NCBI GenBank assembly: GCA_964036045.1
Contig: OZ038378.1
Span: forward strand, 10,230,001 to 10,294,000
DNA from: Eutreptiella sp. 'Long Island Sound 2002'
Lineage: Eukaryota; Protista; Euglenida
Reading direction: 5' to 3'
DNA length: 64,000 bases
The position numbers and the translations under genes are program-made. The notes under the pieces are model-generated. The model was not told the DNA's origin and made no database searches. It worked only from the letters and a program-made list of their open reading frames with translations. Shown piece by piece: positions 3,809 through 63,700 of this stretch (position 1 is its first letter; every line of letters begins with the position of its first letter).

Positions 3809-6290
3809 GTCGTGTTCCGCCCTCAGTTGTAGCTTCCTTGGCTCCCTCTCCCCAGGTCAGTTTTTCAAGTGCCCCCAGCTCAGCCTTCCTTTGGGCCCCT
3901 CTACTGCCGCCGTGGGATTCTGGCTACCTTCTGAGGCCACCCCGGGGATGTGCATGCGTTCAGGCTGCATCTCCCCTTCCATTTCATGAACACCCTTGAA
4001 CCCAGTGTTGATCGACGGCATACTTGCTGTCTGCCTGTCACCCTCAGAATGTGTGTCCGTTGTGGATACATATCACCTGCCATCTTTGGGCCACTTTCAG
4101 CGCGAGGGTAGATTCTAGCGACGTGTCCCTTGCCACTTGCCACCGCCACTTTCATGATGAGCACGGATTTTAGCCACATATTCCTTCCATCTCTACCTGC
4201 CACTTTGGGGGCCACGGTCAGATTGTATGTGCATTGTGTCCCCGGCTGTCTTAGGCCCACCCTCAGAATTAGCGTAGATTTTAGCTACATGTTCCATGCT
4301 GTTGGTGCCACCCTTAGAACGAGCATGGGCATATCCCGTGTCGACCGAGTGTCACCCTCGGAATGTGTCTGGATCATGGCGGTGCATTGCATTGTCACGA
4401 GGCCACCCTGAGAACGAGGGTGTACCCTTGCTGCACATTCCCTTGCGCCTTGGGACCATTGGCAGAAGGAGCATGGACTGCCACGACATATCCCTAGCTG
4501 TCTTGGGGCCCACTGGAATGGGTGTGGCTATGTATTGTGTGCTTTCTCATGCCATCCAGGTAACGAGCGAGGATTCTTGGTGCTTGGCCTAACCTGAGAA
4601 TGAGAGTGGATCCTGGTTGCATGTGGTGTTGGAGACACACTCAAAATGTCTATTCATTGTGGCTACACATCTCTTGCCCCCTCGCATATCTCTCTGGGAC
4701 ATCCGGTTCATGCCAACACGGAGCGTTTTCACATTTTTTCAGACTTTTCTCAACTTTTGGCGTAATGCACCAAAATGTCGTCACCTTGGGGGGGGTATGT
4801 GTATGCTTTTCGAAATCTGTGGGAAAACGCCGTTTCAGAAATGTATGGGTTGGGGGGGGTAGGTGGTCACAGTTTTGCGCACCGAGCTGTACAAGGGAGG
4901 ACACACAGGGCACAGGCAATGGTCCAGGGATCACTCATTATTCCGAATCCGATTCGTTGTCATCGTTGCCCCTTTCTGCAAGGGCCGGGACTCCATTGGG
5001 GCACACATCCCCGTGCTTGTGACTGGGAACATATTTCTTCAGTTTTTCCCAATCCTGCAGCCTGCGTGGCTTCACTGGTACCCACCCTGTGTTCAGGGGC
5101 ATGGCCCACAGGCCGTCAGTTGTGAGGTCCACATTTCGCTGTTTGGTGAGCTGGACCTTGCGCCATGGAATGGCCTCACTGTACCCTGATTTCACCCAGA
5201 CAAAACCGGGGTGGGCAAGTCAGGCCGCCGCGTCACCTGCACCCAAGTTTCACCCCCAGATCGCGCTCTTTTTCGCACCAAAGGTTTCAGTGGCGCATCA
5301 GGGGAAGCAACAGCACGTTGTGTGAATTTGTATGAAGACATGGTGGCTGCCTGTTAGCAAAAATAGGCAGCAGGCAACACAGGCACTGTCCAAAGCGGAG
5401 AAAAATCTCAAACATGTCGTTAGCACAGCATGCAAACCTGGGGTGTTCCGAATAGCCCTTTTCAAGGGCTTTCCGAATATGCCCCACATACCCCCCCCAA
5501 CCGGACACTCAGCGGGCACAAATGAGACCACAAAGGCACCAACCCCTGAAAACGCTCCGTGTTGGCATGAAACCGCACGTCCCAGAGAGATATGTCCTGC
5601 CATTTGGGACTGCACTCATTGGGGGAGCACCTGACGCAGCGCGCGCGCGCAGTGCAGAGAACAGGCAGTCTGGCCCAACCAAGCATCCGCAGTTACTTCT
5701 TCGGGGACAAATTGAGTGCACCGGGGCCGATCCTGGTCAGGACCCGACCCCAAAGGGGGGGGGGGGGGCGGTCCCCCCCCCCCCCTCTACAGACCCCAAA
5801 ATGGTTGTACAGAACAATGGGTTTTGTGGGCGCCAGAGGCGCCGGATATTTTGTTTTAGGCATATGGCAGGGGGAAATTTTTTTGTTCGACCCTATGTGT
5901 CTGTACTCAAAATACTCAGAATTTTGTGGAGAATTCAAAAATGGCTGAAAAGCACAAAAAAGGATTTTGACCCCGACCCGGCCTCCGGGTCGGACCTTGG
6001 CTGATGGGAGCCTGAGTTGAGGGTCTGTAGTGAAACCTAGTAAAAAATTTTTTTTTTAAAAAGTTTTTTTTTTTACTAGGTAACAGTTTACTAGGTAACA
6101 CGTTTTTTTACTAGGTATTGGGAACCTAGTTAAAAAAAAAGTTTTTTTTTTTACTAGGTTTCAAAACCTAGTAAAAAAAAAAGTTTTCGTTTTTACTAGG
6201 TTTCAGAACCTAGTAAAGAAAAAAGTTTTTGTTTTTACTAGGTTTCAGAACCTAGTAAAAACAAAAATTTTTTTTATTACTAGGTTACTG

Positions 6291-9200
6291 GGTAGCCACC
6301 TTGCCCACTTGTGGGCCACTTCTGATTTTGCCCCCCGCTCTGCAGCGGTGGGGCTCCCCTATACGGCAGGGGTGAGGTAGCCAATTTGCCCACTTGTGGG
6401 CCACTTCTGATTTTGCCCCCCGCTCTGCAGCGGAGGGGATCCCCGATACGGCAGGGGTGAGGTAGCCAATTTGCCCACTTGTGGGCCACTTCTGATTCTG
6501 CCCCCCGCTCTGCAGCGGTGGGGATCCCCGATACGGCAGGGGTGAGGTAGCCACTTTGCCCACTTGTGGGCCACTTCTGATTTTGCCCCCCGCTCTGCAG
6601 CGGAGGGGATCCCCGATACGGCAGGGGTGAGGTAGCCAATTTGCCCACTTGTGGGCCACTTCTGATTCTGCCCCCCGCTCTGCAGCGGAGGGGATCCCCG
6701 ATACGGCAGGGGTGAGGTAGCCAATTTGCCCACTTGTGGGCCACTTCTGATTCTGCCCCCCGCTCTGCAGCGGTGGGGATCCCCGATACGGCAGGGGTGA
6801 GGTAGCCACTTTGCCCACTTGTGGGCCACTTCTGATTTTGCCCCCCGCTCTGCAGCGGTGGGGATCCCCGATACGGCAGGGGTGAGGTAGCCACTTTGCC
6901 CACTTGTGGGCCACTTCTGATTCTGCCCCCCGCTCTGCAGCGGTGGGGCTCCCCGATACGGCAGGGGTGAGGTAGCCACTTTGCCCACTTGTGGGCCACT
7001 TCTGATTCTGCCCCCCGCTCTGCAGCGGTGGGGCTCCCCGATACGGCAGGGGTGAGGTAGCCACTTTGCCCACTTGTGGGCCACTTCTGATTTTGCCCCC
7101 CGCTCTGCAGCGGAGGGGATCCCCGATATGGCAGGGGTGAGGTAGCCACTTTGCCCACTTGTGGGCCACTTCTGATTCTGCCCCCCGCTCTGCAGCGGTG
7201 GGGATCCCCGATACGGCAGGGGTGAGGTAGCCATCTTGCCCACTTGTGGGCCACTTCTGATTTTGCCCCCCGCTCTGCAGCGGTGGGGATCCCCGATACG
7301 GCAGGGGTGAGGTAGCCAATTTGCCCACTTGTGGGCCACTTCTGATTCTGCCCCCCGCTCTGCAGCGGTGGGGATCCCCGATACGGCAGGGGTGAGGTAG
7401 CCACTTTGCCCACTTGTGGGCCACTTCTGATTTTGCCCCCCGCTCTGCAGCGGTGGGGATCCCCGATACGGCAGGGGTGAGGTAGCCACTTTGCCCACTT
7501 GTGGGCCACTTCTGATTCTGCCCCCCGCTCTGCAGCGGTGGGGATCCCCGATACGGCAGGGGTGAGGTAGCCACTTTGCCCACTTGTGGGCCACTTCTGA
7601 TTTTGCCCCCCGCTCTGCAGCGGAGGGGATCCCCGATACGGCAGGGGTGAGGTAGCCACTTTGCCCACTTGTGGGCCACTTCTGATTTTGCCCCCCGCTC
7701 TGCAGCGGTGGGGATCCCCGATACGGCAGGGGTGAGGTAGCCACTTTGCCCACTTGTGGGCCACTTCTGATTTTGCCCCCCGCTCTGCAGCGGTGGGGCT
7801 CCCCGATACGGCAGGGGTGAGGTAGCCACTTTGCCCACTTGTGGGCCACTTCTGAGTTTGCCCCCCGCTCTGCAGCGGTGGGGCTCCCCGATACGGCAGG
7901 GGTGAGGTAGCCAATTTGCCCACTTGTGGGCCACTTCTGATTTTGCCCCCCGCTCTGCAGCGGAGGGGATCCCCGATACGGCAGGGGTGAGGTAGCCAAT
8001 TTGCCCACTTGTGGGCCACTTCTGATTCTGCCCCCCGCTCTGCAGCGGTGGGGCTCCCCGATACGGCAGGGGTGAGGTAGCCACTTTGCCCACTTGTGGG
8101 CCACTTCTGATTCTGCCCCCCGCTCTGCAGCGGTGGGGATCCCCGATACGGCAGGGGTGAGGTAGCCACTTTGCCCACTTGTGGGCCACTTCTGATTTTG
8201 CCCCCCGCTCTGCAGCGGAGGGGATCCCCGATACGGCAGGGGTGAGGTAGCCAATTTGCCCACTTGTGGGCCACTTCTGATTCTGCCCCCCGCTCTGCAG
8301 CGGAGGGGATCCCCGATACGGCAGGGGTGAGGTAGCCACTTTGCCCACTTGTGGGCCACTTCTGATTTTGCCCCCCGCTCTGCAGCGGTGGGGATCCCCG
8401 ATACGGCAGGGGTGAGGTAGCCACTTTGCCCACTTGTGGGCCACTTCTGATTTTGCCCCCCGCTCTGCAGCGGAGGGGATCCCCGATACGGCAGGGGTGA
8501 GGTAGCCAATTTGCCCACTTGTGGGCCACTTCTGATTCTGCCCCCCCGCTCTGCAGCGGAGGGGATCCCCTATACGGCAGGGGTGAGGTAGCCACTTTGC
8601 CCACTTGTGGGCCACTTCTGATTTTGCCCCCCGCTCTGCAGCGGAGGGGATCCCCGATACGGCAGGGGTGAGGTAGCCAATTTGCCCACTTGTGGGCCAC
8701 TTCTGATTCTGCCCCCCGCTCTGCAGCGGAGGGGATCCCCGATACGGCAGGGGTGAGGTAGCCAATTTGCCCACTTGTGGGCCACTTCTGATTCTGCCCC
8801 CCGCTCTGCAGCGGTGGGGCTCCCCGATACGGCAGGGGTGAGGTAGCCACTTTGCCCACTTGTGGGCCACTTCTGATTCCGCCCCCCGCTCTGCAGCGGA
8901 GGGGATCCCCGATACGGCAGGGGTGAGGTAGCCACTTTGCCCACTTGTGGGCCACTTCTGATTTTGCCCCCCGCTCTGCAGCGGAGGGGATCCCCGATAC
9001 GGCAGGGGTGAGGTAGCCACTTTGCCCACTTGTGGGCCACTTCTGATTCCGCCCCCCGCTCTGCAGCGGAGGGGATCCCCGATACGGCAGGGGTGAGGTA
9101 GCCACTTTGCCCACTTGTGGGCCACTTCTGATTTTGCCCCCCGCTCTGCAGCGGAGTGGATCCCCGATACGGCAGGGGTGAGGTAGCCAATTTGCCCACT

Positions 9201-9499
9201 TGTGGGCCACTTCTGATTCTGCCCCCCGCTCTGCAGCGGAGGGGATCCCCGATACGGCAGGGGTGAGGTAGCCACTTTGCCCACTTGTGGGCCACTTCTG
9301 ATTTTGCCCCCCGCTCTGCAGCGGTGGGGATCCCCGATACGGCAGGGGCGAGGTAGCCACTTTGCCCACTTGTGGGCCACTTCTGATTTTGCCCCCCGCT
9401 CTGCAGCGGTGGGGCTCCCCGATACGGCAGGGGTGAGGTAGCCAATTTGCCCACTTGTGGGCCACTTCTGATTTTGTTCCCCGCTCTGCAGCGGTGGGG
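6291..9499. repeat. 85-bp minisatellite, ~38 copies
   Basis: Unit GCCACTTTGCCCACTTGTGGGCCACTTCTGATTTTGCCCCCCGCTCTGCAGCGGTGGGGATCCCCGATACGGCAGGGGTGAGGTA. The 85-aa periodicity of the - strand ORFs equals three 85-nt units. Confidence 0.97.
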
Positions 9500-11043
9500 G
9501 TTCGGCTCCAAAAAAAAGAAAGCCGCCAAGAGGAGCCAAGAATTGTCAGACTCCAATTCTGATTCACATTCTAACTCCTCATCGGATGGTAGCTGTGACG
9601 GAGACTCCCTAGCCCTTGCACCACTTGTGAAGCGGGAATTGGACCGTGGAAGCAAGCGGTGGCATTCCATGCACCTATACCGCCCTCCCTTCACTTGTGG
9701 GCAGTGCCATCGGAAAGTTTTCTTATGGTGCGTCTATTGCGAGGGGTGCATGTGGTGTTTGGAAGGTGAGGAGTGCGTTGCTCGCAAGTTTAAAGATAGA
9801 GATGAGTCGCGCTGGGTCTTGCAAAAGTGGGAGGAGGAGGTTGAGGTTGGGAAGATCTTGCATCCCACGCAATCCCATACTGAAACTACCCCCTCCTCCC
9901 CTTGTGCTTTGACGCCCCCCTCCACACACCCGGATGGTGACAGCAGCCTCCCCGCAATTACCCCCGCAAATGCGTCTCCTACCAGCCCGCCTCTAGCCAT
10001 GGAGGAATTGGCCGACCATCCCAATGCTGGGACGGAGACTGTCCCCCCACCCCCATGCTCTAATACCACCCCGCCGTCACAGACGGGAATGGTTATTACG
10101 AGGCCTGTTTGTGGACATGACGTCTTGGCCGCAGTGTGCCATGCCCTGACTAATGGCCCAGGCGGCCCTACTGCCCAATTGCAGCATGTTGAGTCATTGC
10201 TCCATGACGAATGGGAACGACCACTTGACGTGATCATTCCAAGTTCTGGGTCTCAACAATATAAGCTAGAGGCACGCCATTTGAGGGAGGTGGGACAAGT
10301 TTTTGGGTGAGTTCGGCAGTGTAGCTTTTGCTATAGCCCCCCTCTACTCCACCTTCCTACATCAGGACGACGGTGTGAGCTGCCATCCTGCCTGCCTTAT
10401 GATGCTACATTGCCTTTTGTCTAGGCGTGTTGTCAACGGTAGCATCCAACTTCCACAAGACAGATTGTGGTTGTTGCGTGAGATTGCACAGGCAGCTTTG
10501 CACTATCGCAGTTCTCCGCCTGCCCCCCCTATTGAGACCACACCCAGTTGGGCCTTGGCACGGATGTATGCTACGCCCTATTGTTCACCCAGCCGTTCGT
10601 CGTGCTTTTTTTGCGACGACACAGCCCACATCACGTGCCCTGAATGTGGAGTTTATCAGTGTGCCCTGCATGCTTCCGGTTTCTGTTCCACGGAGATATG
10701 TGTGGCATTGCGCAAATGGAATGTGCAATTTACTGCCACACTGGCATGCATTGTGTTGGCATTCGCCTTGGGTGACCGGCTTGTGGTTGACAAGTCGCCT
10801 TCTGTAGATGAGGTCCGTCCAAAGGTGGTGATCCGTGGTGAAGAATTTTTTGTTCCAGAGCATTACCCCAAAGATGCCTCTGGGAGATTGGAGTATGACA
10901 AAAATCTAATCAAAGAGTTGGAAGAAAAGACCACGGGCGTGATTCGCAACATGTGCAAGCACAACCCTCCCTCTGCACAACCCACCTACAAAGACAAGAA
11001 GTCGGACCTCATCTACAAGCGCGTGTTTTGCGACTTTATATAA
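9500..11043 (+). pseudogene. Element-borne Cys-rich protein gene, 5'-truncated and split by one frameshift at ~10300 (Zn-finger motifs, C-terminal SAP/HeH-like domain)
   Basis: ORFs 9447-10310 and 10303-11043 join if one T is removed from gtttttggg. Motifs CGQC..CVYCEGCMWC and CFFC-x7-CPEC-x4-C-x2-H-x4-C. C-terminus homologous to ORF 15861-16271. Confidence 0.55.
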
Positions 11044-12462
11044 AGCACGCGTGTGTGCACCTCATATATGTATATATATATTTATCATATAAAAGCTCCT
11101 TCTTTTCTTGAGCCTCATTTTATTTTTGTTGACCTTGCAATACACGGTTTGGCCCGGGTGGGGCGCCACTTACACAAGTGGCCTGGAATAGACCAGGGGG
11201 CACCATGCCCTTAAACATAAATACCACCTACCGTTGACCCCCCCCCCCCATAAACTTGGTTTTTTTTGTTCAAATTCAAGTCCAAATTTGTCACTACCTA
11301 GTAACCTAGTAAGGGAAAATTTTTGCTTTTTTTACCTAGTAAAAAAATTTTTTTTAAAATTTTTTTTAAAATTTTTGCTTTTTTTACCTAGTAAAAAAAA
11401 ATTTTTTTTTTAAAAAATTTTTTAAAAAAAATTTTTTTTACTAGGTTTTGCTACATTTTACTAGGTTTTGCTACATTTTACTAGGTTTTGCTACGTGCAT
11501 ACTAGGTTTCACCAAATGCCCCTGAGTTGATGGGCAATTTTTTTTGAACAATTTTTTACCCCACTTGTGCATATTCAAAATGATCAGTGTGTCATGGGGA
11601 TCATTTTGAGGTATGTATGTTGGGTTACCCACCAACCCCCCCCTGGGGGCCCGGCAGCTGACCGCCCGACCCGCCGACCCCCAAGGTTTGGGTCAACCAA
11701 GAGGGGGGGGGGGAGGGGTCCCCTCCCCCCCCCCTACAGCCCCCCAAACTGTCGCACACCCCTCGGGGTCACACATTGGCTGGCGGCGGCCCCCGTGATT
11801 GAGTGGCCCCTTGAGTTGGGAATATTCGTATCTTGTGCATTTGACCCAATTTTGTATTTGGCACCAAGTTTGGTACCCTTGTTATGGCCCTTGGCCCCAT
11901 GTGCCCTCCTTCCAATGGCTGCATTCAAGCACAAACCCCTGCCAGGGGGTGTTTCCTACTGACCATAGGCCTACCCCCACTGCCCCTCAGAAGTGACCTT
12001 AGTCAACCAAAGAGGGTCATAAAAAGATGTGGCACTGTACTGCATGGCACCAACCCGCCTTCGGGGAATCCCCCAACGGCTTGAGCAATGGCATTTTGGA
12101 GGGCAGGGCTCAGACACACAAAAACGGTGCCCCACAGTTATGTGCCCCTCCCATTAGGCTGAAAGCAGCCTGAAAGCTCTTGGGGGATGGCTTTGGCAAA
12201 CAAGATCAGTCTTCCGGAGGTCCCATCTACGCCATTTGCCTGCCATCCACATGTCTGGCCTGACTTAAAAGTGGTGCTTGCGGCTGAAAAGTGTGGCACC
12301 CCCTTCCCAGCTCAAGCACAGGCCTGACCTCTTGGTCACATGGTGTGGGTGTCTGTCACCATCAGTCCTATGGAAGTGGAGGTACGGGAAGGAGCATGTG
12401 CCAGGTTAGATCTCGGGCTTCGTAATCGATAGCTACAGCCCCTGGTCGCCCCCTCCTCAGGC

Positions 12463-13404
12463 CAGGGCTCCTTTTAACAACTCGCCCCCCCCCCCCCCCA
12501 GAATAAAGATGCACTTATGCCTGACTGTGGAGTGCATTACCTCTGGTTTGCATTTGTCTGTTTTTTAATTAGGTCACACCCCCCCCCAAGGGGGGGGGTC
12601 CCAGGGTCCCACACCACCCACCCACCCCCCCTAGACCCACCCCAACCCCCCCCCTTCAAAGATTGGGCCAAAATTTTGCTTGGGCGCCTTCGGCGTAATT
12701 GATCCCTGTAGTCGCCGTCCTTGTACCCTGTACTGCATTCGTTGGTCTGCCATTGCCAACTCTGTTACTTTGTCGTATTTTGGGTCCCTGTACTGCAGCT
12801 ATGGCATCTGTGTTCATGAAATGGAGGAAGCCCAACACTTCCCTTCCATGGTCAGGGTTGGATATCTCCAATCGCAGTGACAGTGACAGTAGCAGTAGCA
12901 GCAGTTCTTCATCCGATTCGACATCAAGTTCTTCATCAACACGTCGCAAAAAAAGGGCCCGCAAGTAAATTCTCGTCCTTCGGTTAAACCTGATTGGTTG
13001 CATTTGCCTGTTGCAGTTTTGTATGTATGTAAGTATGTATGTGCTCAGTGACATCAGTCGCTGTACTGTGATTCCACATGGGACCCCCTCCACAAACCCT
13101 GGCTTTGACAGCATGCATGACATTGCGGCACATTCACATCCCTTCGGGGAGATGCCATTGCATGCCATGGCTAAAGCTGCGGCCTTTTTGCCTTTAGAGA
13201 TTTTCGAAAAAGGCTTGGAACCCCCAGTGTGGAATTCAGTATGGCAATTGTTGTTTGCTGGTGATCTGTTTTTTCATGTTGAGTCACACCGTTTCACCAA
13301 AAATTCATTTCGCCGCCCTTCAAAACTCGGCCCCCCCCCGGGGGAGGGGGGTGCCCAGCCAGACCCCCCCCCCCCCTGGACCCCCCCCCTTAAAAGGAGC
13401 CCTG
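12463..13404. mobile_element. hAT-superfamily non-autonomous element, 942 bp
   Basis: 15-bp perfect TIR CAGGGCTCCTTTTAA / TTAAAAGGAGCCCTG. 8-bp TSD CCTCAGGC (12455-12462, 13405-13412). Confidence 0.85.
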
Positions 13405-13445
13405 CCTCAGGCCCCTCTGCGTCAAACCCCCCGCCCTATCTGCAG

Positions 13446-13703
13446 GCAGACTTGCTGTCGCGCGGGGTGCGTGTCAACGATGCGGGGCGGACCTGGTACT
13501 TCATGCCCCCCACGGATCCCAGTCACAATCTGCAGCCCTGGGCGCGAGCGGCCGACGACGCGGCCGCCGATGGCTCTGACGCCGACGTTATGTTTGCTGC
13601 GGAGATCAATGTCATGGTCAACGCGCGGGAGGCGCGGCGTGCGGCGGGGCTATGGGAAGAGGCTGACTTGATCCGCCGCCAGATCGTGCTCAGGGGCGTG
13701 CAG
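13446..13703 (+). CDS. Exon 3: CysRS-like repeats 1/2
   Basis: ctgcAG|gcagac, phase 0. ADLLSRGVRVNDAGRTW completes repeat 1, followed by AREARRAAGLWEEADLIRRQIVLRGVQ. GT at 13704. Confidence 0.85.
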
Positions 13704-14669
13704 GTGCCGGACTGAGACCATATGATCGTCCAGATGTGATTTGGTGCATAGGACGATCCTGGGCTGACAGGGCGCTTGTCCTGTGCCACCCCCCGCCTCA
13801 ACAAAACAGATCCCTAGGGTGCCTGGGGCACCACACCAGGGGTATTTGCGTACCGCAGTGTGTGAAATTGGACGTTTGTCTGTGTACAATCATCCCTTTG
13901 GGAGATCAAATTATCCCCCAATGAAATTTTCGATTTTGCCCCCTCAAAACGTGGTTGGCAATTGCGGCCACGACATGTCGATGCGTCGATCCAGACCCAG
14001 GCCCCATAGCACCCTTTTCTTCTATATGGACCTCCAAACCAATGGGTGGGGGTCCCGGGTTCTATCTCCACGTATGGGCCCCGCTATGGGGCCCCGCAGG
14101 TGAGGACTTAGGCTGGCATGGGATGGCTCATGGGGGTGGGGTTTGCCGGTCCAAGGACGTGAAGTAGCCCCCCCCCCCCCCCAAGAGGGCCTTGGGCCAC
14201 AGTGAGTTATGGAGGAGGGGGGTGCTACTTCACGTCATACCCAAGGAGGTGCCCCCACCCTGGGTTGGCTGAAAATGTTGCTTTTTTTCCCAGGGACCTG
14301 TGGCGGCCCCTCTGTACCCTTGGGCCAGACTTGGGTCATCATTCGGTGACAATGGGCGCACATAAAGACCCATGGGGAGCCATGTGGCCCCAATTAGGCG
14401 CACCTACTTGGTGCCATTGGCTCGTAAAAGGGCCGTTCTGGGCTGTCTTGGGCTGGGGCTCCCCAAGGGACTCGTACACAACCGTATGTTGTAATTCGTG
14501 TAATTTTTTTTTCCGCTGTAAATGCGCGTAACAAAAAAACCGTATAGTCGTGTAATTATTTTTTTTTCGCTGTAAGTCGTGTAAGCCGGCTTACACGACT
14601 TACAGCAAAAAAAAAAAATTACACGACCTTACGGTTTTTTTGTTACACGCATTTACAGCAGAAAAAAAA

Positions 14670-15011
14670 GGCGGCAGGGGTTATGTAGCCACCTTGCCCA
14701 CTTGTGGGCCACTTCTGATTCTGCCCCCCGCTCTGAAGCGGTGGGGACCCCCTAGGCGGCAGGGGTGATGTAGCCACCTTGCCCACTTGTGGGCCACTTC
14801 TGATTCTGCCCCCCGCTCTGAAGCGGTGGGGACCCCCTAGGCGGCAGGGGTTATGTAGCCACCTTGCCCACTTGTGGGCCACTTCTGATTCTGCCCCCCG
14901 CTCTGAAGCGGTGGGGACCCCCGAGGCGGTAGGGGTTATGTAGCCACCTTGCCCATTTGTGGGCCACTTCTGATTCTGCCCCCCGCTCTGAAGCGGAGGG
15001 GATCCCCTAGG
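14670..15011. repeat. 85-bp minisatellite variant, 4 copies
   Basis: Same backbone, with diagnostic GAAGCGG..GACCCCCTAGGCGGCAGGGGTTATGTAGCCACC. Confidence 0.93.
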
Positions 15012-15137
15012 CAGGGCCGTCCTTAAGGGACGAGATTTTTTTTTGTGTTAAGGACAGCCCTTAAGGACAGCCCCTAGAGGCCTTTTTGCCCCGGCCGAAC
15101 GTGGGCCATGTCTACCCCCCGGGCCCTCTTTTGGGCA

Positions 15138-15760
15138 CCACTTCTGATTTTGCCCCCCGGTCTGAAGCGGTGGGGATCCCCGATACGGCAGGGGTGAGGT
15201 AGCCAATTTGCCCACTTGTGGGCCACTTCTGATTTTGCCCCCCGCTCTGAAGCGGTGGGGCTCCCCGATACGGCAGGGGTGAGGTAGCCAATTTGCCCAC
15301 TTGTGGGCCACTTCTGATTTTGCCCCCCGCTCTGCAGCGGTGGGGCTCCCCGATACGGCAGGGGCGAGGTAGCCATTTCGCCCACTTGTGGGCCACTTCT
15401 GATTTTGCCCCCCGCTCTGCAGCGGTGGGGATCCCCGATACGGCAGGGGTGAGGTAGCCATTTCGCCCACTTGTGGGCCACTTCTGATTTTGCCCCCCGC
15501 TCTGCAGCAGTGGGGCTCCCCGATACGGCAGGGGCGAGGTAGCCATTTCGCCCACTTGTGGGCCACTTCTGATTTTGCCCCCCGCTCTGCAGCGGTGGGG
15601 ATCCCCGATACGGCAGGGGTGAGGTAGCCAATTTGCCCACTTGTGGGCCACTTCTGATTTTGGCCCCCGCTCTGCAGCGGTGGGGCTCCCCGATATGGCA
15701 GGGGTGAGGTAGCCATTTCGCCCACTTGTGGGCCACTTCTGATTCTGCCCCTCGCTCTGA
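15138..15760. repeat. 85-bp minisatellite, ~7 copies
   Basis: Nearly the unit of 6291-9499, plus a ccatttcgccc variant. Confidence 0.93.
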
Positions 15761-15860
15761 ATTTTGTCCCCTTTTGTTTTTGCCCTTCGTGTATGCAACA
15801 GTGTCCTTCAAGCAATGCTCTGCGAATGGCACCGGGGCATACACGAAGAAATCGGCCACA

Positions 15861-16271
15861 ATGAGTTCCGTGGGCACGGATGATACCCAAGTTGAAGGTG
15901 CACTTTCGGCTAAGGAGGACAGTGTTCAGGCCACCCCCACCCCACTCGAAGGCAAGGAGGCCTCCGCCGAGCAGAGCGTGGAAAGCCCGGAGGCCAGGCC
16001 GCAACCTTCCGTGGACACTCCCACCGAGGAGGAGGACACCCGTCCCAAGGTCCTCATCCGTGGAGAGTGGCGCAAGGTGCCGGATGGCTACCCAGCAGAT
16101 GCATCTGGCCAGCTGGAGCGTGACCAGCTTTTCATTGATGACCTGTGCAAGCAGGTAGTTCCAGAGTTGCGCGCCGCTTGTCAGCTTAACGCCAATCCTG
16201 GTGCAAAGCCAAAGTCCGGTGACACAAAAACGGACTTGATCTACAAGCGTGCATTCTGCAACTACTTGTAG
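15861..16271 (+). CDS. 136-aa acidic protein with conserved C-terminal SAP/HeH-like domain (may be a terminal exon starting at 15802)
   Basis: RPKVLIRGEWRKVPDGYPADASGQLERD..VVPELRAACQ..SGDTKTDLIYKRAFCNYL* aligns without gaps to RPKVVIRGEEFFVPEHYPKDASGRLEYD..KKSDLIYKRVFCDFI* of the first element. Pyrimidine tract + AG at 15800-15801. Confidence 0.65.
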   Translation: MSSVGTDDTQVEGALSAKEDSVQATPTPLEGKEASAEQSVESPEARPQPSVDTPTEEEDTRPKVLIRGEWRKVPDGYPADASGQLERDQLFIDDLCKQVVPELRAACQLNANPGAKPKSGDTKTDLIYKRAFCNYL

Positions 16272-17457
16272 CGGGTGCATGTTTTGTGGGCTGTATTTTC
16301 CTCCGCCGTTTGGTGTACCAATGGTTGGCCCCATGCCAGTGCCTTGGTGGCCTCTAATGGTGGCAGTAGCGTTGGCCATGGCCCTGTCGGGACTCTTTTT
16401 CTTGAGCCTGATTTTGTTCCCAGTGCAGGCACACTGGATGTTGGCCATGGCCCTGTCAGGACTCTTCTCTTGGGCCTGATTTTGAGTCTAGTGCCAATGA
16501 CAACATGTGAAACTATGTTATATTGGCCGAGTCCCAACTAATTGGTGGCCACGCAGAGTACTATGTGCTTTGTGGACTCGGCGTCCCATCGTTAAGGTCG
16601 CTATGGGGTGCCGTACGGAACCGGCACCTGTACATATTGCGCATGTATTGCAAAGGTTGGATTTCTTTCAATTTTTCAATTTTTTTTATAATTTACACGA
16701 CTTACCGCAAAAAAAAATTACACGACTTACCGCAAAAATTAAAAAATTCAATTTTTTTTTATAATTCACACGACTTACAGCAAAAAAAAAAATTACACAC
16801 ATTTACAGCAAAAAAAAAATTACACGACTATACGGTTTTTTTGTACACGACTTACATTTTTCACCAACCGGCTTGTGCAATTTTCACCCCAAGATCAGGT
16901 CAAAAGCCAAAAATTCGACATTGTGACCACCCGTAATGGTCAATTATATCACGTGTGAGATCGGGGCCAGGTAGTACTAAGCCGTCCTGGGGTGTCCTCA
17001 TGACCCTGCAAGTCGAAGGGGACTGGGGACGTTTCGCCAGTGCCCGGAGATGGCACGGGGCTACCATGGGGACCCCTTCCCAAAGATACGCACGATTTGT
17101 GTGGTTCCAAATTTCTGCCAGTAAACGACTCAAATCCGCCTGAACGGCTTTGCTGCTTCCTACCCTTTTTTCCGAACCTCGCGCCCCAGCAATTTCTTTG
17201 CGTTGCCGTCCTTTGCTGAGCTTTGGTGCGCCTTGGCATGACCCGCTGTGCCCTGCTGTGCCTTGATGCCCTGATGCTGCCACACCCAGAAACCCGTTGC
17301 ATCCCGTGCCCGTAGCCAGGGACCGGTGATCATGCGCTGTCTGCTGGCCGCAAGGGGAAAGTCTAGCGCCCACAAACCTATGACACACGACTCAACCAAA
17401 TGCGGTCGGGCGCCCGCGGAATGCCTCCGCGCACCTTTTGCACTGTGCTGTCCGCAG

Positions 17458-17850
17458 GTGAGCGACCGAGAGCGTGTGTGGTGGGTGGGGCCCCGCACCC
17501 GAAGGGCGTCCGGCGGGCGTCGCGCGCGCCAGCCCTGGCGCCGGGACGTCTACGACATTGCGGCGGACGGCTCGGTACAGGACAAGACCTTCGAGGCCAA
17601 GACCAACCGCACGTTCGCCAAACGGGAGGAGCTGCGGGCGGCGCAGGACTACGACGGTGCGGACCGGCTGCTGCAGGAGCTGCTCGCCCAAGGCGTCAGC
17701 ATGGACCAGAAGAAGCGGCTGTGGTGGACGGGCCCCCGCAACTTCGAGTTGAGGCCCTGGTCCCGTGCGGAGGATGACACCGGGAGAAAGGGATCTGAGG
17801 CCGATGCAGCGCTGACGACGGAGATCAGCGCCCTCCTTAACAAGAGGGAG
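17458..17850 (+). CDS. Exon 4: CysRS-like repeats 2/3/4
   Basis: tccgcAG|gtgagc, phase 0. VSDRERVWW..KREELRAAQDYDGADRLLQELLAQGVSMDQKKRLWW..ISALLNKRE. GT at 17851. Confidence 0.85.
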
Positions 17851-18179
17851 GTCCGTGTCCCGCCCTTCCAAAATGAAGCAATGAAGACCGTCGTGGCAGG
17901 CGCGGTCGGAGCTAATTGCAGTGAAGCAAACCTGACCCATTGCGGCCTCCCTTCCGCCCCCCCTTCCCCCCTCACCCACGGCTCTGGGGTTGGGCTCCGG
18001 GGGTCCACGGACCTTCAGCCCGAGCGCAGAGCCCCAGAGGACTGCCTGGCCGATGGCACAGGGAGCGCCAGTGATGTGTAGCAGTTTGGCGGTCCTGAGA
18101 CCCCTGGCCCTGTCATAACCTTCCCATATCAGACGTGGTGGAGAGCACCGTCCAAACCCAACGGCCATGGGAATGACTG

Positions 18180-18500
18180 AGTGTGAAGCCTGTGGCAGGG
18201 CTGCCCCCCCCGATAGACACACAGGACATCTATCAACAAGCGGCCGGACTACAGGGTGCCCAACCATGGCTTTTCGGAACACCCCTCCTCGGAACCTCCA
18301 ATGGTGAGCATGTGGTGATCTGGGTTTCTATTTTCCCGTGGTATACAACGCACTTGGGCGGTGGGGCCAGCGTCACCAACCACGTAATACGCACACTCCA
18401 TCCGGCCGATAGCCAGCGTACAGGAAACAGGTACAGGTGAATTACGGGTGCGACTATTTTGCGACTCAAAGTCCATCATTCTTGGCATTTATGGCTCCTC
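18180..18500 (-). pseudogene. Possible degenerate non-LTR reverse transcriptase fragment
   Basis: MDFESQ..AQVR..IGGSEEGCSEKPWLG loosely follows the spacing of RT motifs (DfekAfD..a.vr..GvrQGcplSP). Broken by stops and frameshifts. Confidence 0.2.
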
Positions 18501-19549
18501 CTGCACATGGGCCAAATGTGCCCACAGCTGGTTGGTTCCAGCATAGTTGCTGCTTTGTGATTTAGAGCACATCATTTTCAACTCTGTTTACACCCTACAC
18601 ATGGCCCTATCCTACAGTCGTAACACAACACACCTCTGCTAGTGTGGCAACAGTGTACGAGAGCGAAAGGCTGTATGACGCCACTGAGGCAAACTGGAGC
18701 CCAAACAAATAGACTTAGAAAGAAGGTGCGGGGAGAGCCACGACACACCAAGTTAGGGTTAGATATGCACGCACTTAGGGCTGCAATCGCTCCTAGACTA
18801 ATGGCACGTAGTGTCCTTGGGACATTTTTCTCGGCCTCATTCATAAGGTGCCAAGGCGCAGTGGTTTGGCACTTTCTGGGAAATTTTTGCAAGTTTGGGA
18901 GTTGTGGGGGGATGAGCCCCCCCTCCCCCCCCAATATTTTGAGGGTGGAGGATTTATTTTGGAAGGTTTCAGGTCACCATTTGATGATCTGTCCGAGATT
19001 TTCTGGTTTTGGTTGAAATTTTGGCCATTTTCGCCTTCTGCTGCCAGACTGCTCGCAAGGGAAGAAATTGCGACATGATGGTCACCGGTGTCGCTTTTTC
19101 TAGTTTTTGGTTGGGCATCCACCCCCTCCATCCTATTTTGGGGGGAGGAATCCAATTTTCAGAGTGTTGGGTTGTGGTTTGATGGGATGATGTGGGGACT
19201 TCTGATTTTCAGGCCGCGTGCAGGAGGTGCCTGGAGATTGACAAGTGTGGCAAGTGTGGCAAGTAGGAAAAAGTGGCATCCAAGGCCAAGTGAGGTCAAT
19301 TTCTGACGGTGTTGGTGCGTTGCTGCTGTATTGTGTGTGTGCAAATGTTTCCAAAAAAGCCTCGGGTATCAAAACAAGTGGTCAAAACAATCATTGACTA
19401 CATACCTGTGGTGCGGTGCAGTCTGACACCTGACGAGAAAAGGCCAAAAAAAAAACCCCTTGGGGCCACTCGCTACTCCCCCTGCCAAGACCCCCCCCCC
19501 CCCCCACCCGCAGCATTGACAGGGACGCCAGGGATGGCGGGAGCTTCAG

Positions 19550-19620
19550 CAGCACCAGGATCGAAATCTGCGCCTCTTGAGTTCGGCCGCATGCTCTACC
19601 ACTGAGCCACCCGGTCTCTC
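19550..19620 (-). pseudogene. tRNA-like remnant (possible SINE head)
   Basis: - strand GGGTGGCTCAGTGGTAGAGC (A box, D arm) ..GATTTCGATCC (degenerate B box). No intact acceptor stem. Confidence 0.45.
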
Positions 19621-19895
19621 CCATAGATTCCGCTGTGCCCATGGAGCGTTGGGATGGATGCAGTGGCTGTGGAATATGAAGCTGACATGGGGGGCTGCAC
19701 TGGGAGAGATTGATCGGAATTCAAGTGAGAGCGCGCCACCCATTGTTGCCGGCGATCTGCTTAGCAGCAGAGTGTACAATGCATTTGTGGTTCGCTGCAT
19801 CTCATTACTTGAAGCTCGCAGTTTATATGCGAGCGGATCGCGTTATGGCCACGACCAGTCGCTGGTGTTTGACGACCTGCACCCTTCTTCTGCAG

Positions 19896-20039
19896 GAATT
19901 CCGGAAGGTGCGCGACTTTGGGGAGGCAGATAAAATTGCAGCAGATCTTACAAACAGGGGCATCGTGCACGATGACCAGCTGCGAATCTGGTGGACTGGC
20001 AAGCGGTTAGGCATTCTCATCCCTTGGACCCGTGCAGAG
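19896..20039 (+). CDS. Exon 5: CysRS-like repeat 4
   Basis: tctgcAG|gaattc, phase 0. EFRKVRDFGEADKIAADLTNRGIVHDDQLRIWWTG..PWTRAE. GT at 20040. Confidence 0.85.
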
Positions 20040-20104
20040 GTGTGTATCATTGTGCCTGTTCCAATCGTTTGTGCACTTCCCAACTTTCCTGTCTGCTTGC
20101 CAAC

Positions 20105-20360
20105 AGCAACAACAACAACAGCAGTAGCAGCAGCAGCAGCAGCAACAGCAGCATTAACAACAACAGCAACCAAGGCAAACAGCACCGATTTGTATAGCAC
20201 GTTAAGCGTTCTGGGGCAGGCGATGTGGCCCACCGTAAGAGCACCATCATCCAATCCAACCCAACCCAACCACCACCACCACCACCACCACCACCACCAC
20301 CACCACCACCACCACCACCACCACCACCACCACCACCACCACCACAGCAAAATTAACAAT

Positions 20361-20397
<37 letters not shown>

Positions 20398-20660
20398 CTA
20401 TCCACAACAGCACTAACAACAACAGCACCAACAACAACAGCACTAGCGACAACAGCACTAACAACAACACCACTGACAGCAATACCACTAACAACAAGAC
20501 CACTACCACGAACAACACCACTAACGCTAACAACAACACTGTCACTAACACCAACAACGCCAACACTAACAACAACAACGCTACGACCAATAACACTAAC
20601 AACACCAACACTAACAAGATCAATACTAACAACAGCAACACTAACAACAACAACCAACCA
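20105..20660. repeat. Compound trinucleotide microsatellite (CAA/CAG/CAC/CTA)
   Basis: Directly visible; includes ~25 CAC units at 20270-20345. Confidence 0.95.
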
Positions 20661-21130
20661 CCCTCCCATTTCGGGGACCCGGTTTCCCTGAATCAGCCCG
20701 AAACATTAGACCGGATTCGTCGATTTCTGCTGTTGCTGGCAAAAAAGACCATTTAGTGAAGGTGCCTGTGTTGTGGTGAGAAATACCCATTTGCAACTTT
20801 GTTCCATCCCTGCTAACAAAGACGTCTCATGGCAAATTGTTCTGCTTGTGGCAGCAGGCAGCGGGTCAACATTGACTTCAACCTTGGCGCAACTCAACAG
20901 GCCCGTTTCAGGAACAACATGCGGAAAAGCCAACAGGGTCTATGTTGTGCACATTGTGCCTTCAAACGGCACCGTGTTTTGCAAAGAAGACTGCAACCTT
21001 GTGAGTACCAGGGACCAATGAAAGCAATGTGAGGACTGCTGCCAAGTAGACCAAACCTGATCAGCCGCACCCCTTTGCCCTGGTTTATGCCGATTTACCC
21101 GAGCCCCCCCAAAACGGACTGGGGGTTGAG

Positions 21131-21975
<845 letters not shown>

Positions 21976-31000: not shown

Positions 31001-32070
31001 TGGTGTTGCGTCCGACAAAACCAGAACAAGGTATAGTCATGTTTGACCCGCCTTGCCATGTGCCACCCTGCCCCATCTTGTCGCATGCTATACCTTCCCC
31101 CTCTCCTTTCCCTTTGCTAACCCCCACCTCCACCCCAGCCCCAAGCTGTAGAAGAGACGAAGAAGGGGTGTGACTGAGGGTTACTCAAGGCGCCGAGGAT
31201 CCGCAAGCCGCTTGGGATCTTACGCACATGTGTATCCCCTGCCTTGTCCAAGCCGCCTTGTCTATGGGGGTGTGGCTTGCACAATGCCAGCATCAGGGCA
31301 TTTTGGAGCATCAAATAGCAAGTAGTCATACCTCTTGGGGACAGTTGAAGGCGCCAAGGTGTTTGCAATACAAACATTTTGTCCCAAACCCTCCTGACTG
31401 ACGCTATCCAAGGGGCTTTCCAACTCCTCCCCACTGAGGGCCCCCCAACACAGCAATGGCTATGTTGCCACACTTATGTCCCCACTCATCCGCACCGCTT
31501 TGGGGATCCCCATGCGGCAGGCGTCATGTAGCCACAACTCCTCCCGACCAGGTACGTCAGGTATTATGCAGCGACCAAGGGTCATGCAGCGGCACAGGAC
31601 CAACGGGGGCATGGGAAGAGGAGCAGCAGCAGTACAACACGTGAAATATGTGAAATTAGCAATGCAGAAGAAGCACGACGCTGCGATTTGGTAAGGACAC
31701 AGAAAACGTTCCAACATCCCGCATTTTGCCGGAACAATTACATCATTGCCTCGGTGCTACCCTGTTTCGGATAAGGAAGACCACCTAAAGACAGGGTTCA
31801 GGGTTGCATGAGATACACACCGTTGGCTGCGTGGTCGGGGCTTGTGGTTTGGACTTTTCTGGTTCTGCGGTGCCAGACTGGGTCAGCCGTGCTTGTGCCT
31901 AGGTAGGGCCTTTTGGTGAAATCGGCCAACACGCTGTGCTGGTGTTGACCGGGGGATATTTTTGCACTTGGGGCCTACACACGTGGACTGCACGGGTGAA
32001 CAACAATACCATCAGTCAAAACAGGTTTGTCTGCAGACAGGGGGGACTTTTTGCGCTTTTCCCAAGGTGT

Positions 32071-37589: not shown

Positions 37590-37925
37590 CAAGGTAGGGG
37601 TTATGCAGCCCCTTTCGTTTCTTTCTGCTCTGGAGACCCCAAGAATGCAAGGGCCATGTAGCCACTTTGATTCCAGCCCCGCTTTGCAGATCCCCAAGAA
37701 TGTAGGGGCTGCATAGCCACTTTGATTCCCTCCCCATGTTGGGGCCCCCCCAGACGGCAAGGGTCATGTAGCCACTCTGCCCACATTTCGGCCCCCAAGA
37801 TGGCAGGGGCTATGTAGCCACTTTGCCCACATTTGGGGCCCCAAGACAGCAGGGTTCATGCTGCCACTTCGACTTCCTCGCCATTTGGGCCCCGAAGACG
37901 GCAGGTTTATGTAGCCACTTTGCCC
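37590..37925. repeat. Diverged ~46-bp tandem repeat related to the 85-bp unit
   Basis: gtagccac(t)ttgcccac anchors at 37768, 37814 and 37860, period 46. Confidence 0.7.
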
Positions 37926-38100
37926 ATCCTCACCAAAAAAAAAACCCGTTTCATCACCAAAAAACCCTATCCCCCCCCCCCCAATCTTACCGAAAAACCT
38001 GCCAGACCCCCCAAGTGTTTGGACAACCCTGTAACACACATACCAAGAACCATTGGTCCTCACATAGTTGAACAACAAACACAAAGCACCAAAACATGTA

Positions 38101-47333: not shown

Positions 47334-48572
47334 GTGGGAAAGAGAACAAGAAAGATGAAAGAAAGAACGCAGTGCGTTCGCCCCTGAAAGAATTTGGCGC
47401 TGCACTTGGACCGGGGTTTTGCTCTGAATGCAGGATCTTCACTTCACAACAAACGACATTTGTATAGCGCCTCGTCTTGCTAATCTGGCGCTCAAAAGCT
47501 CTGATCAAAAGTGGCTACCTCAAAATCAAAATTGGCTACCTCACCCCTGCCTTCTTGGGGGCCCGCAAGTGGTCGGAAATGCTACCTAACCCCTGCATTC
47601 TCGGGGGTCCCCAGCAAAGGGGACAAAATTTTCGGGCGCCTTCGGCTCGCTGCCATTGACCCTTGGTAACTAAGTGGGCCCGGAGGGCAGGGGGGGGGGA
47701 GTCGCGTACCCCCCGACGTCCCCCCCATGCACAGGAGTAAGAAAGAAGCAAGAGAGGCATATGAAAAGAGGTGTGAGAGGATGAGGACTGCTGCTGAACA
47801 AATCATCATGGCTGTGAACAGTGTAGCCCAATTGCGAGGTATTCACAAGATTGAAATTTGCATGACCCACTGTTCTACTCAAGCCCCCCTTCCCAATCTC
47901 CTGCCCTCATTCTTTGATTATTCTCTTGGAGATTTGTGCACGACAAAGAGGTGCCGGACTCGGCTGCCAACGGCGGTCCCCGTCAGGGGTTTCTTGCATA
48001 CAATGCTCAGCTTCTTCAGCCAGCTAACATTCATTATTGTATCAGCACAACCAACGCAGACGCCACTTGATCTTGCTCAAGCATGTCGACCGGCAGTGGC
48101 GGCAGAGGGTGGTGGAGCAGTCGGGATTGACGCCGTCACCTGCGCACGGTGCACCCATTCCCCGTTGGCCCCTTGCGGCAATGCGCTGCGGGAGCCAACA
48201 ACCATCAGTCACTTTCCCTTTGACCATGTCGAGGGGAAGGGCTGCTCTTAGGACAGCAACCCCGCGAAAACACCATCAGGTATGGCCCCTTCCAAGTACC
48301 ACGTGGGGGTGGGGGCAACGGGATTAAAGGCAAGCGTGCAGACCCTCCTCTCGGCCTCTCGGAGAAGAATTTAACGCATAACAACGCATCTGTCGGCTGT
48401 GCAGAGTGCACCAATCAAGTGCACCAACATGTGCACCGGTCGTGGTACACAGATGTCACGTCACGTGGCTGTCCATTCCACTCCACTTCACTCCCGCATG
48501 CTCCCCTTCGCCATCATTCTCATGCACCCGTTTTGTTTTGTTCTCACATTCTCTGGGAGCAGGGCCACTGGG

Positions 48573-61528: not shown

Positions 61529-63039
61529 CGTGATGCCCAGGCCCCACTGAGCTTGGCCATTGGTCACGCTCTCGCTGCGGACAACCATGACCCCAGGGGC
61601 TCTACTCACAGTACGCCCCACAAGGGCGGCAGCACCAGATCGCTGCACCTCAGCACGAGGGCTGGCAGTTCCGGTGGTGACTGGAAGGGTTGCAATGGGT
61701 CTGGTCTGGACATGAAACTCGATGTTTGTGCATGGAGCCACTGATGCCATCAGGAAAAGCACAAACACAACGGCTGCTGAAGCGCCCAAAACCCGGAGGG
61801 TCTGGCTGCTCTGTGGTGAATGGGCTTTGAGCGGGCAGCAACCGTGGTGGCAACACATTGCAAGAGCAATGAAGACTTTGAACACCCAAAGATGCGGGAA
61901 AAGGAGGAAGAAGGTGGGTATGAGGTTCCTGTGTGTGTTTGCATGCACGCATGCACACCACCAAGTGATATCTGTCTAGTGCACTGCTAAATACAATGCC
62001 TTTTCACGGACATGCGTGACCTCCATGTACAGAGCAGAAGGAGGAAGAGAGAAGAAATGAAATGAAATGAAATGAGTCTGCAAGACGCCTTTCCTCCCAA
62101 GTGCCCCCAAAATGGCCCTGTTACAAAAATATTGTTCCTTGCCCTCCCAAGCCCAAACACAATATGCAAAATGCAATAGGGCACTTTGGTGTGAGTTGTG
62201 CTAGAGTGCACTTTCGATGAACGCGCAACTTCGATTTTGGGATTCCTACCCAAACAGGATGTGGCAATCGTTCTCCAAAACCATGAGGTTTGCACTTCCT
62301 ACTTTGGGTGTTCATAGGTATATTCAAGTACAAGTTTGGAGACGGCAGGATATTACACATGCTTCTCTTGCTGCTTTCTCCTGTTGTACAGAGGCAGTGG
62401 GTGGGTTTGGGTTGGTTTCCTATCTAGTGGGATTTGCTGAATGTGCGCCCAATGCAACAACTTTGCCCACTAGCTATGTGTCATATCTCCCACACCATCA
62501 CTGGCATGCAAGATGTGCACATGTTCAAATGCCACACTCAAATATATCACCTAGGTGTGCACACATTGACAACAAAAACCATTTTTCATCCTTTGCGGAG
62601 GCTTCCTCGTGCCCACACAAACTCAGGTACATGAGGCCAAAGTCCATTAGCTATACCTAATTTGCCCGTGGGCTCAAGTCAACAAAAGGCCCATTTTCAC
62701 AAGTGGTAAAGTGCACGCGAGGCAGAGTGCCTTGGTTTGGATGCCCCTCCCAACCGCCATGCCCCAAGTGGGTGAAATACCCAGCAAAACATGACCCCTA
62801 GCACGCGAGCCCCATCCCCATAGCAGCTTACAAACGAGCCCTGCCGCTCATGGGGCCAAGTGCACGCGAGGCAGAGCGCGCTAGTTTGGATGCCCCTCAC
62901 AAGAAAGGAAAGGAACGAAGGAATGCACATCAAGGAGCATGCACACCACTCCGGATTCCCATGCAGAGGGCAGGTGAAATGCGCGTTAGATGAATCACCT
63001 AATCACCTATAGGTCTTGCAAGGGGTGGAGTCTACTCCA

Positions 63040-63700
63040 CCCACACCCACACCCACCCACACCCACACCCACCCACACCCACACCCACACCCAAACCCAC
63101 ACCCACACCCACACCCACACCCACACCCACACCCACACCCACACCCACACCCACACCCACCCCCACCCCCACCCCCACCCCCACCCACACCCACCCACAC
63201 CCACCCACACCCACACCCACACCCACACCCACATCCACACCCACACCCACACCCACACCCACACCCACACCCACACCCACACCCACACCCACACCCAGCC
63301 ACCCCCACCCCCACCCCCACCCACACCCACCCACACCCACCCACACCCACACCCACACCCACACCCACACCCACACCCACACCCACACCCACACCCACAC
63401 CCACACCCACACCCACACCCACACCCACACCCACACCCCCACCCACACCCACACCCACACCCACACCCACACCCACCCCCACCCCCACCCCCACCCCCAC
63501 CCCCACCCCCAACCCCACCCCCACCCACACCCACACCCACACCCACACCCACACCCACACCCACACCCACACCCACACCCACCCACACGCACACGCACAC
63601 GCACACACACACGCACACGCACACGCACACGCACACGCACACGCACACACACACACACACACACCACACACACACACACACACAGACACCACACGCACAC
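63040..63700. repeat. (CCACAC)n / (CCCCAC)n / (CACACG)n / (CA)n compound microsatellite
   Basis: Directly visible. Confidence 0.96.

Follow-up and report, generated by a model that had tools for sequence, protein, structure and literature searches.

How two transposon-like elements with unrelated subterminal repeats came to carry the same minisatellite and the same protein domain is the question raised by a 64,000-nucleotide stretch of the euglenid Eutreptiella sp. 'Long Island Sound 2002' (GenBank assembly GCA_964036045.1, contig OZ038378.1, positions 10,230,001 to 10,294,000), the whole of which is called the window in what follows. The initial annotation described the two elements as sharing one cassette, in which members of a lineage of Mutator-like elements (MULEs) carry their own 85-bp satellite together with a small SAP/helix-extension-helix-like accessory protein. 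What it observed is confirmed: both 85-bp arrays were found by Tandem Repeats Finder (TRF), the subterminal repeats of element 1 are CTAG-based and those of element 2 are of an unrelated TTACACGAC type, and the C-terminal domains of the two + strand open reading frames (ORFs) are homologous, with 39 of 86 residues identical (45%, E 4e-22). No third copy of this domain was found within the 64-kb window. The small protein does not stand as a separate gene, since the domain is the tail of a long fusion ORF and neither window ORF is a complete gene. It is likely, in our judgement, that neither element is autonomous and that the two are products of internal deletion or rearrangement in two sister families of a MULE lineage whose full gene is one long ORF.

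The fusion gene

Word-index searches with the two window ORFs gave 243 and 158 protein relatives of 40–100% identity, and a third search gave 111. All but one of the relatives of the two ORFs derive from one ENA assembly, made up of megabase contigs, and within one assembly each ORF is part of a family numbering hundreds of copies. A Cys-rich finger upstream of the window ORFs is common to element 1 and the family of element 2 (residues 51–169 of the ORF at locus L001 match 9654–10052 of element 1 at 34% identity, tblastn E 2e-20), and longer relatives add an upstream domain with a nearly invariant H-W, an acidic residue and Q-x-D-G-x-S-C. Two intact relatives came from the third search and share the domain order of finger, central domain, linker and tail: P0242, of 494 aa, represents 155 near-identical sequences, and P0271, of 532 aa, represents 68. 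In P0517 (914 aa), P0516, P0521 and P0509, longer members of these clusters, the frame is free of stops from the C-terminal domain up into a transposase part with a SWIM-like finger, and in P0517 the order is a Mutator-type DDE transposase, the SWIM-like finger, a C1-like zinc finger, an Ulp1-like (CE-clan) cysteine protease and the C-terminal domain.

The Pfam MULE profile (PF10551) matches the transposase region of locus L007 with an E value of 5e-4 (20.9 bits, profile positions 14–97 of 99) and that of P0517 with 0.0019; P0517 also matches Transposase_mut (PF00872, E 0.0066), and the ten nearest named clusters in the ESM Atlas were all MULE, SWIM or Mutator. The region is predicted to be a MULE-type DDE domain, and is called diverged because the Pfam scores fall under the curated cut-offs. 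At L007 the whole gene is present in a decayed state (about 9420–12864), broken by several stops and frameshifts; an 85-bp array of at least 9.3 kb immediately precedes it. From the transposase through the C1 finger and the CE-clan protease to the tail, the full fusion would measure roughly 1,150 residues or more. A tblastn search with the N-terminus of P0517 found no transposase in the window, and the ORFs flanking the element at L006 gave no Pfam match. Directly after the decayed gene of L007, at the expected site of the 3' subterminal repeats, lies a 41-bp satellite of 189 copies (13367–21108, 7.7 kb) that looks like an expanded subterminal repeat.

The assignment of the central domain comes from structure prediction. 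The AlphaFold model of P0242 is confident only at residues ~190–333 and 417–494, and across the protease region (~186–340) the predicted local distance difference test score (pLDDT) is 60–87. The 50 best Foldseek matches of this model were, without exception, CE-clan cysteine proteases or their acetyltransferase relatives, including SENP2/7 and Ulp1, and all 50 entries listed by VIA-align were CE-clan (Z 5.6–10.1), among them HopZ1a (Z 10.1), the CidB deubiquitinase (8.9), XopD (7.4), NopD, Den1, the de-sumoylating protease 5lnb and adenain. In an alignment of 20 sequences from both clades, H240, W241, Q291, D293, S296 and C297 are at least 90% conserved, and the acidic residue lies within a conserved W-E-P-L or F-D-P-L motif. 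The model supports a predicted CE-clan-like fold, not membership of the C48 family. The finger N-terminal to it resembles a DC1/C1 domain (PDB 1v5n, E 0.0026); SWIM-like and C1/DC1-like fingers are the ones present in the fusion protein, and a PHD finger gave no Pfam match in P0517, P0509, P0521, P0242 or P0271 at E thresholds of 0.1–1.

Two probable deletion derivatives in the window

The coordinates of both elements are collected in Table 1. Element 1 was delimited exactly at 6021–11521, as first proposed, with a GGG terminus and a perfect 9-bp target site duplication. It has A/T-tract subterminal foldbacks with a CTAG core at both ends, and its 3' terminus recurs in L003 and L005. Its gene is a remnant. 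About 437 bp that are kept in L003 are missing, and with them the first half of the protease (P0121 residues 1–130); the junction at 10287/10288 is visible both against L003 and as loose contig ends, and the reading frame shifts there. Beyond the junction, the product is 90% identical to P0121 residues 131–381, was also placed in the multi-sequence alignment, and includes a HIT-like finger (weak zf-HIT match, E 0.03). A frame-restoring intron at 10309–10426 (GTGAGT...TAG) was considered and rejected: in longer copies this stretch encodes the conserved protease segment with the catalytic Cys, and RNA-library contigs showed no splice joints across it. Contigs of an estuary metatranscriptome tile 9504–11220, likewise without splice joints.

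Two features of the 3' non-coding region were followed across copies. The motif noted downstream of the stop does occur in element 1, element 2 and L001; as a feature of the lineage it fails, being missing from six of nine loci, and a 14-mer of it with up to three mismatches occurs 12 times in the window. A block of about 87 bp containing the palindrome GCCACTTACACAAGTGGC was seen at 11146–11232 of the window, at 11452–11538 of L002 and at about 9230–9320 of L005. Between element 1 and L002 it is 87% identical, although the coding DNA is only ~67% identical, and to judge by this conservation it may be a cis-acting site.

For element 2 the ends needed correction. Comparison with the fuller copy in L001 set them at 14484 and 16864, which is 16–20 bp inside the approximate limits first given (14468/16884). 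All of the fusion gene before the last ~130 codons has been deleted from it, and the full upstream protein is visible in P0242 and P0509.

Table 1. Features of the two elements in the window (positions are those of the window).
Feature	Position	Strand	Remarks
Element 1, left target site duplication (CTGAGTTGA)	6012..6020		same 9-mer at 11522-11530, directly outside both termini
Element 1, 5' terminus GGGTCTG... and CTAG-based foldback subterminal repeats, 42-bp period	6021..6290	+	direct families D1-D4, inverted pairs I1-I5; TRF period 42, 4.4 copies
Element 1, 85-bp minisatellite, variant A, 37.7 copies	6291..9499	+	TRF score 5933, 97% matches; units average 98% identity to array consensus
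Element 1, fusion-gene remnant: basic/Ser-Asp-rich stretch, C1-like Cys-rich finger, Pro/Thr-rich linker	9500..10287	+	stops at internal deletion junction
Element 1, C-terminal half of CE-clan protease (Q-x-D-G-x-S-C), HIT-like zinc finger, hydrophobic stretch, conserved C-terminal domain (~10810-11040)	10288..11043	+	frame differs from 9500-10287
Element 1, 3' non-coding region with the noted motif (11100-11120) and inter-family conserved block (11146-11232)	11044..11290	+	L002 comparison, motif scan
Element 1, 3' CTAG-based subterminal repeats and terminus ...AAATGCCC	11291..11521	+	D1-D4; three 20-bp tandem copies 11436-11495
Element 1, right target site duplication (CTGAGTTGA)	11522..11530		same as 6012-6020
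Element 2, 5' terminus and TTACACGAC-type subterminal repeats	14484..14671	+	97% identity to L001 4284-4470; ends compared at single-base level
Element 2, 85-bp array, variant B block, ~4 units	14672..15010	+	consensus 98-99% identical to L003/L005 arrays, 87-89% to variant A
Element 2, leader-like insert inside array	15011..15139	+	visual match to L006 6430-6560 and L004 5975-6070
Element 2, 85-bp array, variant A block, ~7 units	15140..15761	+	consensus 98-99% identical to element 1/L001 arrays
Element 2, last ~130 codons of fusion gene: acidic linker and C-terminal domain (16032-16268)	15885..16271	+	96% identity to L001 6178-7186
Element 2, 3' non-coding region, TTACACGAC-type subterminal repeats (16675-16864), 3' terminus ...TTTTTCAC	16272..16864	+	TRF rows 16675-16825; L001 homology up to L001's duplication-flanked end

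The other copies share this plan. At L001, L002, L004, L005, L006 and L007 the order is 5' subterminal repeats, 85-bp array, gene and 3' subterminal repeats, and the part of the gene that adjoins the array differs among the seven copies compared: it is mid-DDE in L006, the basic stretch before the C1 finger in element 1 and L001, the inside of the C1 finger in L002, and a short spacer before the linker in element 2. Perfect target duplications flank element 1 and the elements at L001 and L004 (9 bp each) and at L006 (10 bp); at element 2, L002 and L005 no clean duplication was made out. The terminal inverted repeats are short and imperfect (element 1, 16 of 22 positions matching; L001, about 14 of 22), and arrays of subterminal repeats lie at both ends. 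These duplications, and the MULE-type DDE domain in the same ORF of longer copies, support the original placement in a MULE lineage. Interstitial telomere-like CCCTAA/CCCTAAA repeats were seen at 12985–13058 of L002, within or beside a family-3 element.

Internal-deletion derivatives are usual for cut-and-paste transposons, and a scheme of this kind probably accounts for the locus. The full element would encode, in order, an N-terminal region, the MULE DDE domain, the SWIM-like finger, the basic stretch, the C1/DC1-like finger, the CE-clan protease, a low-complexity linker and the tail, with the minisatellite placed between the 5' subterminal repeats and the ORF. Its middle would be lost by deletion after excision, probably through interrupted gap repair or template switching, with both ends spared. 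The look of a common cassette would arise because internal deletion spares both element ends, and the tail would survive in most copies because the last coding part adjoins the 3' end. Transposase would be supplied in trans and would recognise the family-specific subterminal repeats, while the protease might remove SUMO- or ubiquitin-like modifiers or process the fusion protein, the tail might tether the protein to DNA or chromatin, and the shared satellite could act as a hub for recombination between families.

Several observations weigh against this explanation. Every Pfam MULE score is below the curated cut-off (20.9 versus 27.6 bits), and the Pfam family Peptidase_C48 (PF02902) gave no match at E values up to 1, the sole related signal being a YopJ-family one at E 0.27. 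An intact full-length autonomous copy was not found among the loci fetched, the best of them (L007) being decayed, and P0517 begins mid-DDE at the array junction. Element 2 has neither a GGG terminus nor a clean target duplication, its flanks being TACACAACC and CAACCGGCT. The evidence from RNA can be read in two ways: relative to the unique part, the array is about as deep in the RNA runs as in the DNA runs, and DNA carry-over is possible. Finally, the commonest forms, the P0242 and P0271 clusters, are intact ORFs that begin just past the transposase part, and a short protein starting there could have a role of its own.

This last point leads to the alternative that has most in its favour, in which the C1–protease–tail protein, or the tail alone, is a true accessory protein of short elements, for example a repeat-binding anti-silencing factor like VANC/KIU of the plant VANDAL elements. 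The two clusters of 155 and 68 keep an intact ORF, as would be expected of such a role, but near-identical copies may just be young, and in P0517, P0516, P0521 and P0509 the frame runs on upstream into the transposase. Ulp1-carrying VANC proteins that recognise motifs in non-coding repeats provide a precedent (PMC13317346); the 85-mer, however, does not co-vary with the protein. That the junctions in element 1 and L001, which belong to different families, fall at one and the same basic stretch also accords with an accessory protein, yet neither window copy can make it, one being frameshifted and the other a tail without a conserved start. Selection on the tail is a further point on its side. 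The ratio of non-synonymous to synonymous divergence (dN/dS) was 0.5–0.8 for pairs within families, 0.45 between the two subfamilies represented by L002 and L005 (dS 0.55), and 0.2–0.3 between families, where dS is saturated; for the last 78 codons alone it was 0.36–0.64 in five of six pairs. Values near 1 were thus not what was seen, and the ratios support a C-terminal domain that is conserved and evolving non-neutrally. Taken together, we regard a true accessory protein as quite unlikely, and prefer internal deletion of a fusion gene.

The 85-bp minisatellite

The consensus sequences of ten arrays were compared. The 85-bp unit comes in two variants, A and B, with 87–89% identity to each other. 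Within either variant the families agree at 96–99%, and all ten consensus sequences share 70 of the 85 positions. The unit is present in at least four families, between which coding DNA is ~67% identical and synonymous sites are saturated, and the subterminal motifs of the families that share it differ (CTAGGT, TTACACGAC, ACTCAGT and CGCGACTTACGC). Variant A was found in families 1, 2, 3 and 4, and variant B in families 2 and 3b as well as beside the family-1 gene in L003. As far as these consensus sequences indicate, the distribution of the variants does not follow the families, which points clearly to exchange between families at the arrays.

Such an exchange can be seen in element 2 itself. 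Its array (14672–15761, 12.8 copies with 83% matches by TRF) is interrupted at 15011–15139 by an insert that corresponds to the 'leader' of family 4, which there separates the 5' subterminal repeats from the array; the insert contains a 13-bp tandem repeat, TTAAGGACAGCCC. Because it holds both variants of the unit, split by a family-4 leader, element 2 is evidently a chimera, a product of recombination between families.

Could the array be a general genomic satellite, in or beside which the elements merely landed? It is enormously abundant, with a summed contig depth that exceeds the unique part's by a factor of about 10^4, suggesting that the unit is extremely abundant in the genome. At L003 (1731–9001), in what is a rearranged or array-only context, a 7.3-kb variant B array lies reversed upstream of the family-1 gene, without subterminal repeats on either side. 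In element 1, L001, L004 and L006, however, the array sits within the target duplications, with the 5' subterminal repeats before it and the gene after it, in the same orientation each time, and it was present at nine of nine loci that had been chosen through the protein. A chance landing is very improbable, and the proposals that the satellite belongs to the element, and that domain and array go together, both survive.

Some features of the unit may point to more than passive spread. The arms of its palindrome (GCCCAC/GTGGGC) are kept while the centre varies, and it folds better than shuffled sequences (z −2.7), so a functional constraint is possible. It is conceivable, though doubtful, that the unit is a functional cis module, whether as a promoter common to the families, an anti-silencing platform or a platform to which a conserved part of the fusion protein binds, and is at the same time a hub of homology at which the families recombine and lose their middles.

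Two further observations concern the same sequence. Shorter repeats at 37740–37935, 47533–47564 and 31501–31535 of the window, comprising a 46–52-bp satellite and isolated pieces, share GGCAGGGGT.ATGTAGCCAC...GCCCAC with the 85-bp unit; since they carry part of it, the motif is used by other repeats of the genome. Read on its minus strand, the array has no stop in any of the three frames at 6280–9567 of the window, at 6464–9847 of L006 and at 4246–6681 of L007, giving ORFs of up to 1,095–1,127 aa that were called as proteins by the gene caller of the assembly. These ORFs are probably spurious and will pollute protein databases.

The C-terminal domain

The tail of ~78 residues, modelled from 39 sequences with a pLDDT of 88, is predicted to form a β-hairpin and three helices, the last two of which make a helix-extension-helix. 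Its description as a SAP domain could not be upheld by sequence: Pfam SAP (PF02037) matched neither the window ORFs at E values up to 1 nor the 39 aligned tails at E values up to 10. Its motif E-L-R...K-x-D-L-I-x-K-R is akin to the SAP consensus, and its last ~47 residues superpose on Rho_N (root-mean-square deviation, rmsd, 2.1–2.6 Å over 43–47 residues) and on SAP domains (2.9–4.4 Å); unlike SAP, the tail has a longer linker between the helices, a preceding β-hairpin and an extra helix. A Foldseek search against the PDB gave nothing under E 4. The best structural match was an unrelated helical region, that of T4 endonuclease VII (Z 5.0); helix-extension-helix domains recur among the weak matches, namely Rho_N (4.1), the SAP domain of SIZ1 (3.5), PIAS1 (2.9), Hcc-1 (2.9) and E1B-AP5 (2.8), and four of ten Atlas rows were Rho_N/SAP clusters (rmsd 2.1–2.6 Å over 44–47 residues). 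All of these Z values are within the chance range for small helical motifs. What is left of the SAP/helix-extension-helix proposal is a weak resemblance in predicted fold, confined to the last ~47 residues. Searched against PDB sequences, the tail profile gave only weak matches to ribosomal protein eS17 (E 0.016–0.36), which were judged to be chance.

Between families the tail is 41–48% identical (38% between the most distant subfamilies). Set against the 96–99% identity of the 85-mer, this does not favour the suggested pairing of the domain with the satellite as a cognate binder and its site.

A search of 1.84 billion representative proteins with the tail profile gave 261 matches; the 150 listed were all of 51–263 aa, and the eight that were sampled all came from the same assembly. 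That the domain began as part of an ordinary host gene, of which two unrelated elements each captured a fragment through Pack-MULE-type transduplication, as the Ulp-like domains of plant MULEs are usually explained, is scarcely credible, since no long host protein was among the matches listed, the domain order is colinear in all families and the domain invariably occupies the element's 3' end. There is no sign of a host gene.

Relation to known elements

The initial annotation knew of no named family with this layout, and there are in fact two sets of precedents. Rehavkus elements, relatives of MuDR/MULE that form a sister group, have a 9-bp duplication, subterminal repeats and a minisatellite able to grow to tens of kb; they have been reported from arthropods and annelids, with the minisatellite before the 3' end and a transposase that bears a PHD finger (PMC6446971; bioRxiv 10.1101/2024.12.02.626372). 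The elements described here are likened to them by layout, having a 9-bp duplication, termini that are inverted or fold back and carry subterminal repeats, and an internal minisatellite near one terminus. They differ in that the array is 5' of the gene and in that, in place of a PHD finger, which was not found, the protein has SWIM-like and C1-like fingers and a protease.

The second set are Mutator elements that carry Ulp1 domains, namely Kaonashi/KIU and VANDAL20 of Arabidopsis, CUMULE of melon, others in rice, grapevine and maize, and MuDR-type elements of hydra and lancelet (PMC2836005, PMC13317346, PMC2528002). As in these, a CE-clan (Ulp1-like) cysteine protease is encoded, many copies are without a transposase, and the protease is conserved, which suggests that it has a role in the life of the element. 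Unlike theirs, the protease here is too diverged for Peptidase_C48, shares one ORF with the transposase, is preceded by a C1-like finger and is followed by a lineage-specific tail. Ginger1 also joins a DDE transposase and a C-terminal protease domain, of Ulp1 or OTU type, in one polypeptide (PMC2836005, PMC13317346, PMC2528002). Its DDE is of the integrase type. The single polypeptide with DDE and protease is the point of likeness; the DDE domain here is instead of MULE type, with 9–10-bp duplications. The target duplication of Ginger1 is 4–5 bp. A literature search found no published description of euglenid MULEs.

Elsewhere in the window, + strand ORFs at 13011–13715 and 17326–18081 share a weak motif like the C-terminal region of cysteinyl-tRNA ligase (Pfam CysS_C, E 0.01 and 0.26), which may be a repeated motif of the genome. 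Long microsatellite tracts of CAG/CAACAA type and of CACCCA, with a strong strand composition skew, lie at 20100–21972 and 63038–63700.

Significance

The feature is real and well-defined, and is for the most part ordinary biology, that of non-autonomous Mutator-like elements; the shared and exchanged minisatellite is the part worth follow-up. What appeared to be a new cassette is explained as deletion derivatives of a Mutator lineage in which the transposase is fused to a protease of SUMO/ubiquitin type. Protease- and satellite-bearing Mutator elements are thereby extended to the euglenids, whose large, repeat-rich genomes are barely annotated, and the domain map would allow hundreds of orphan ORFs in the assembly to be annotated as transposon remnants. 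A satellite that is nearly unchanged in families that have diverged beyond DNA alignment, together with a visible chimera, offers a case for how transposon-borne satellites persist, exchange and expand, and lets one ask whether such arrays drive the formation of non-autonomous elements.

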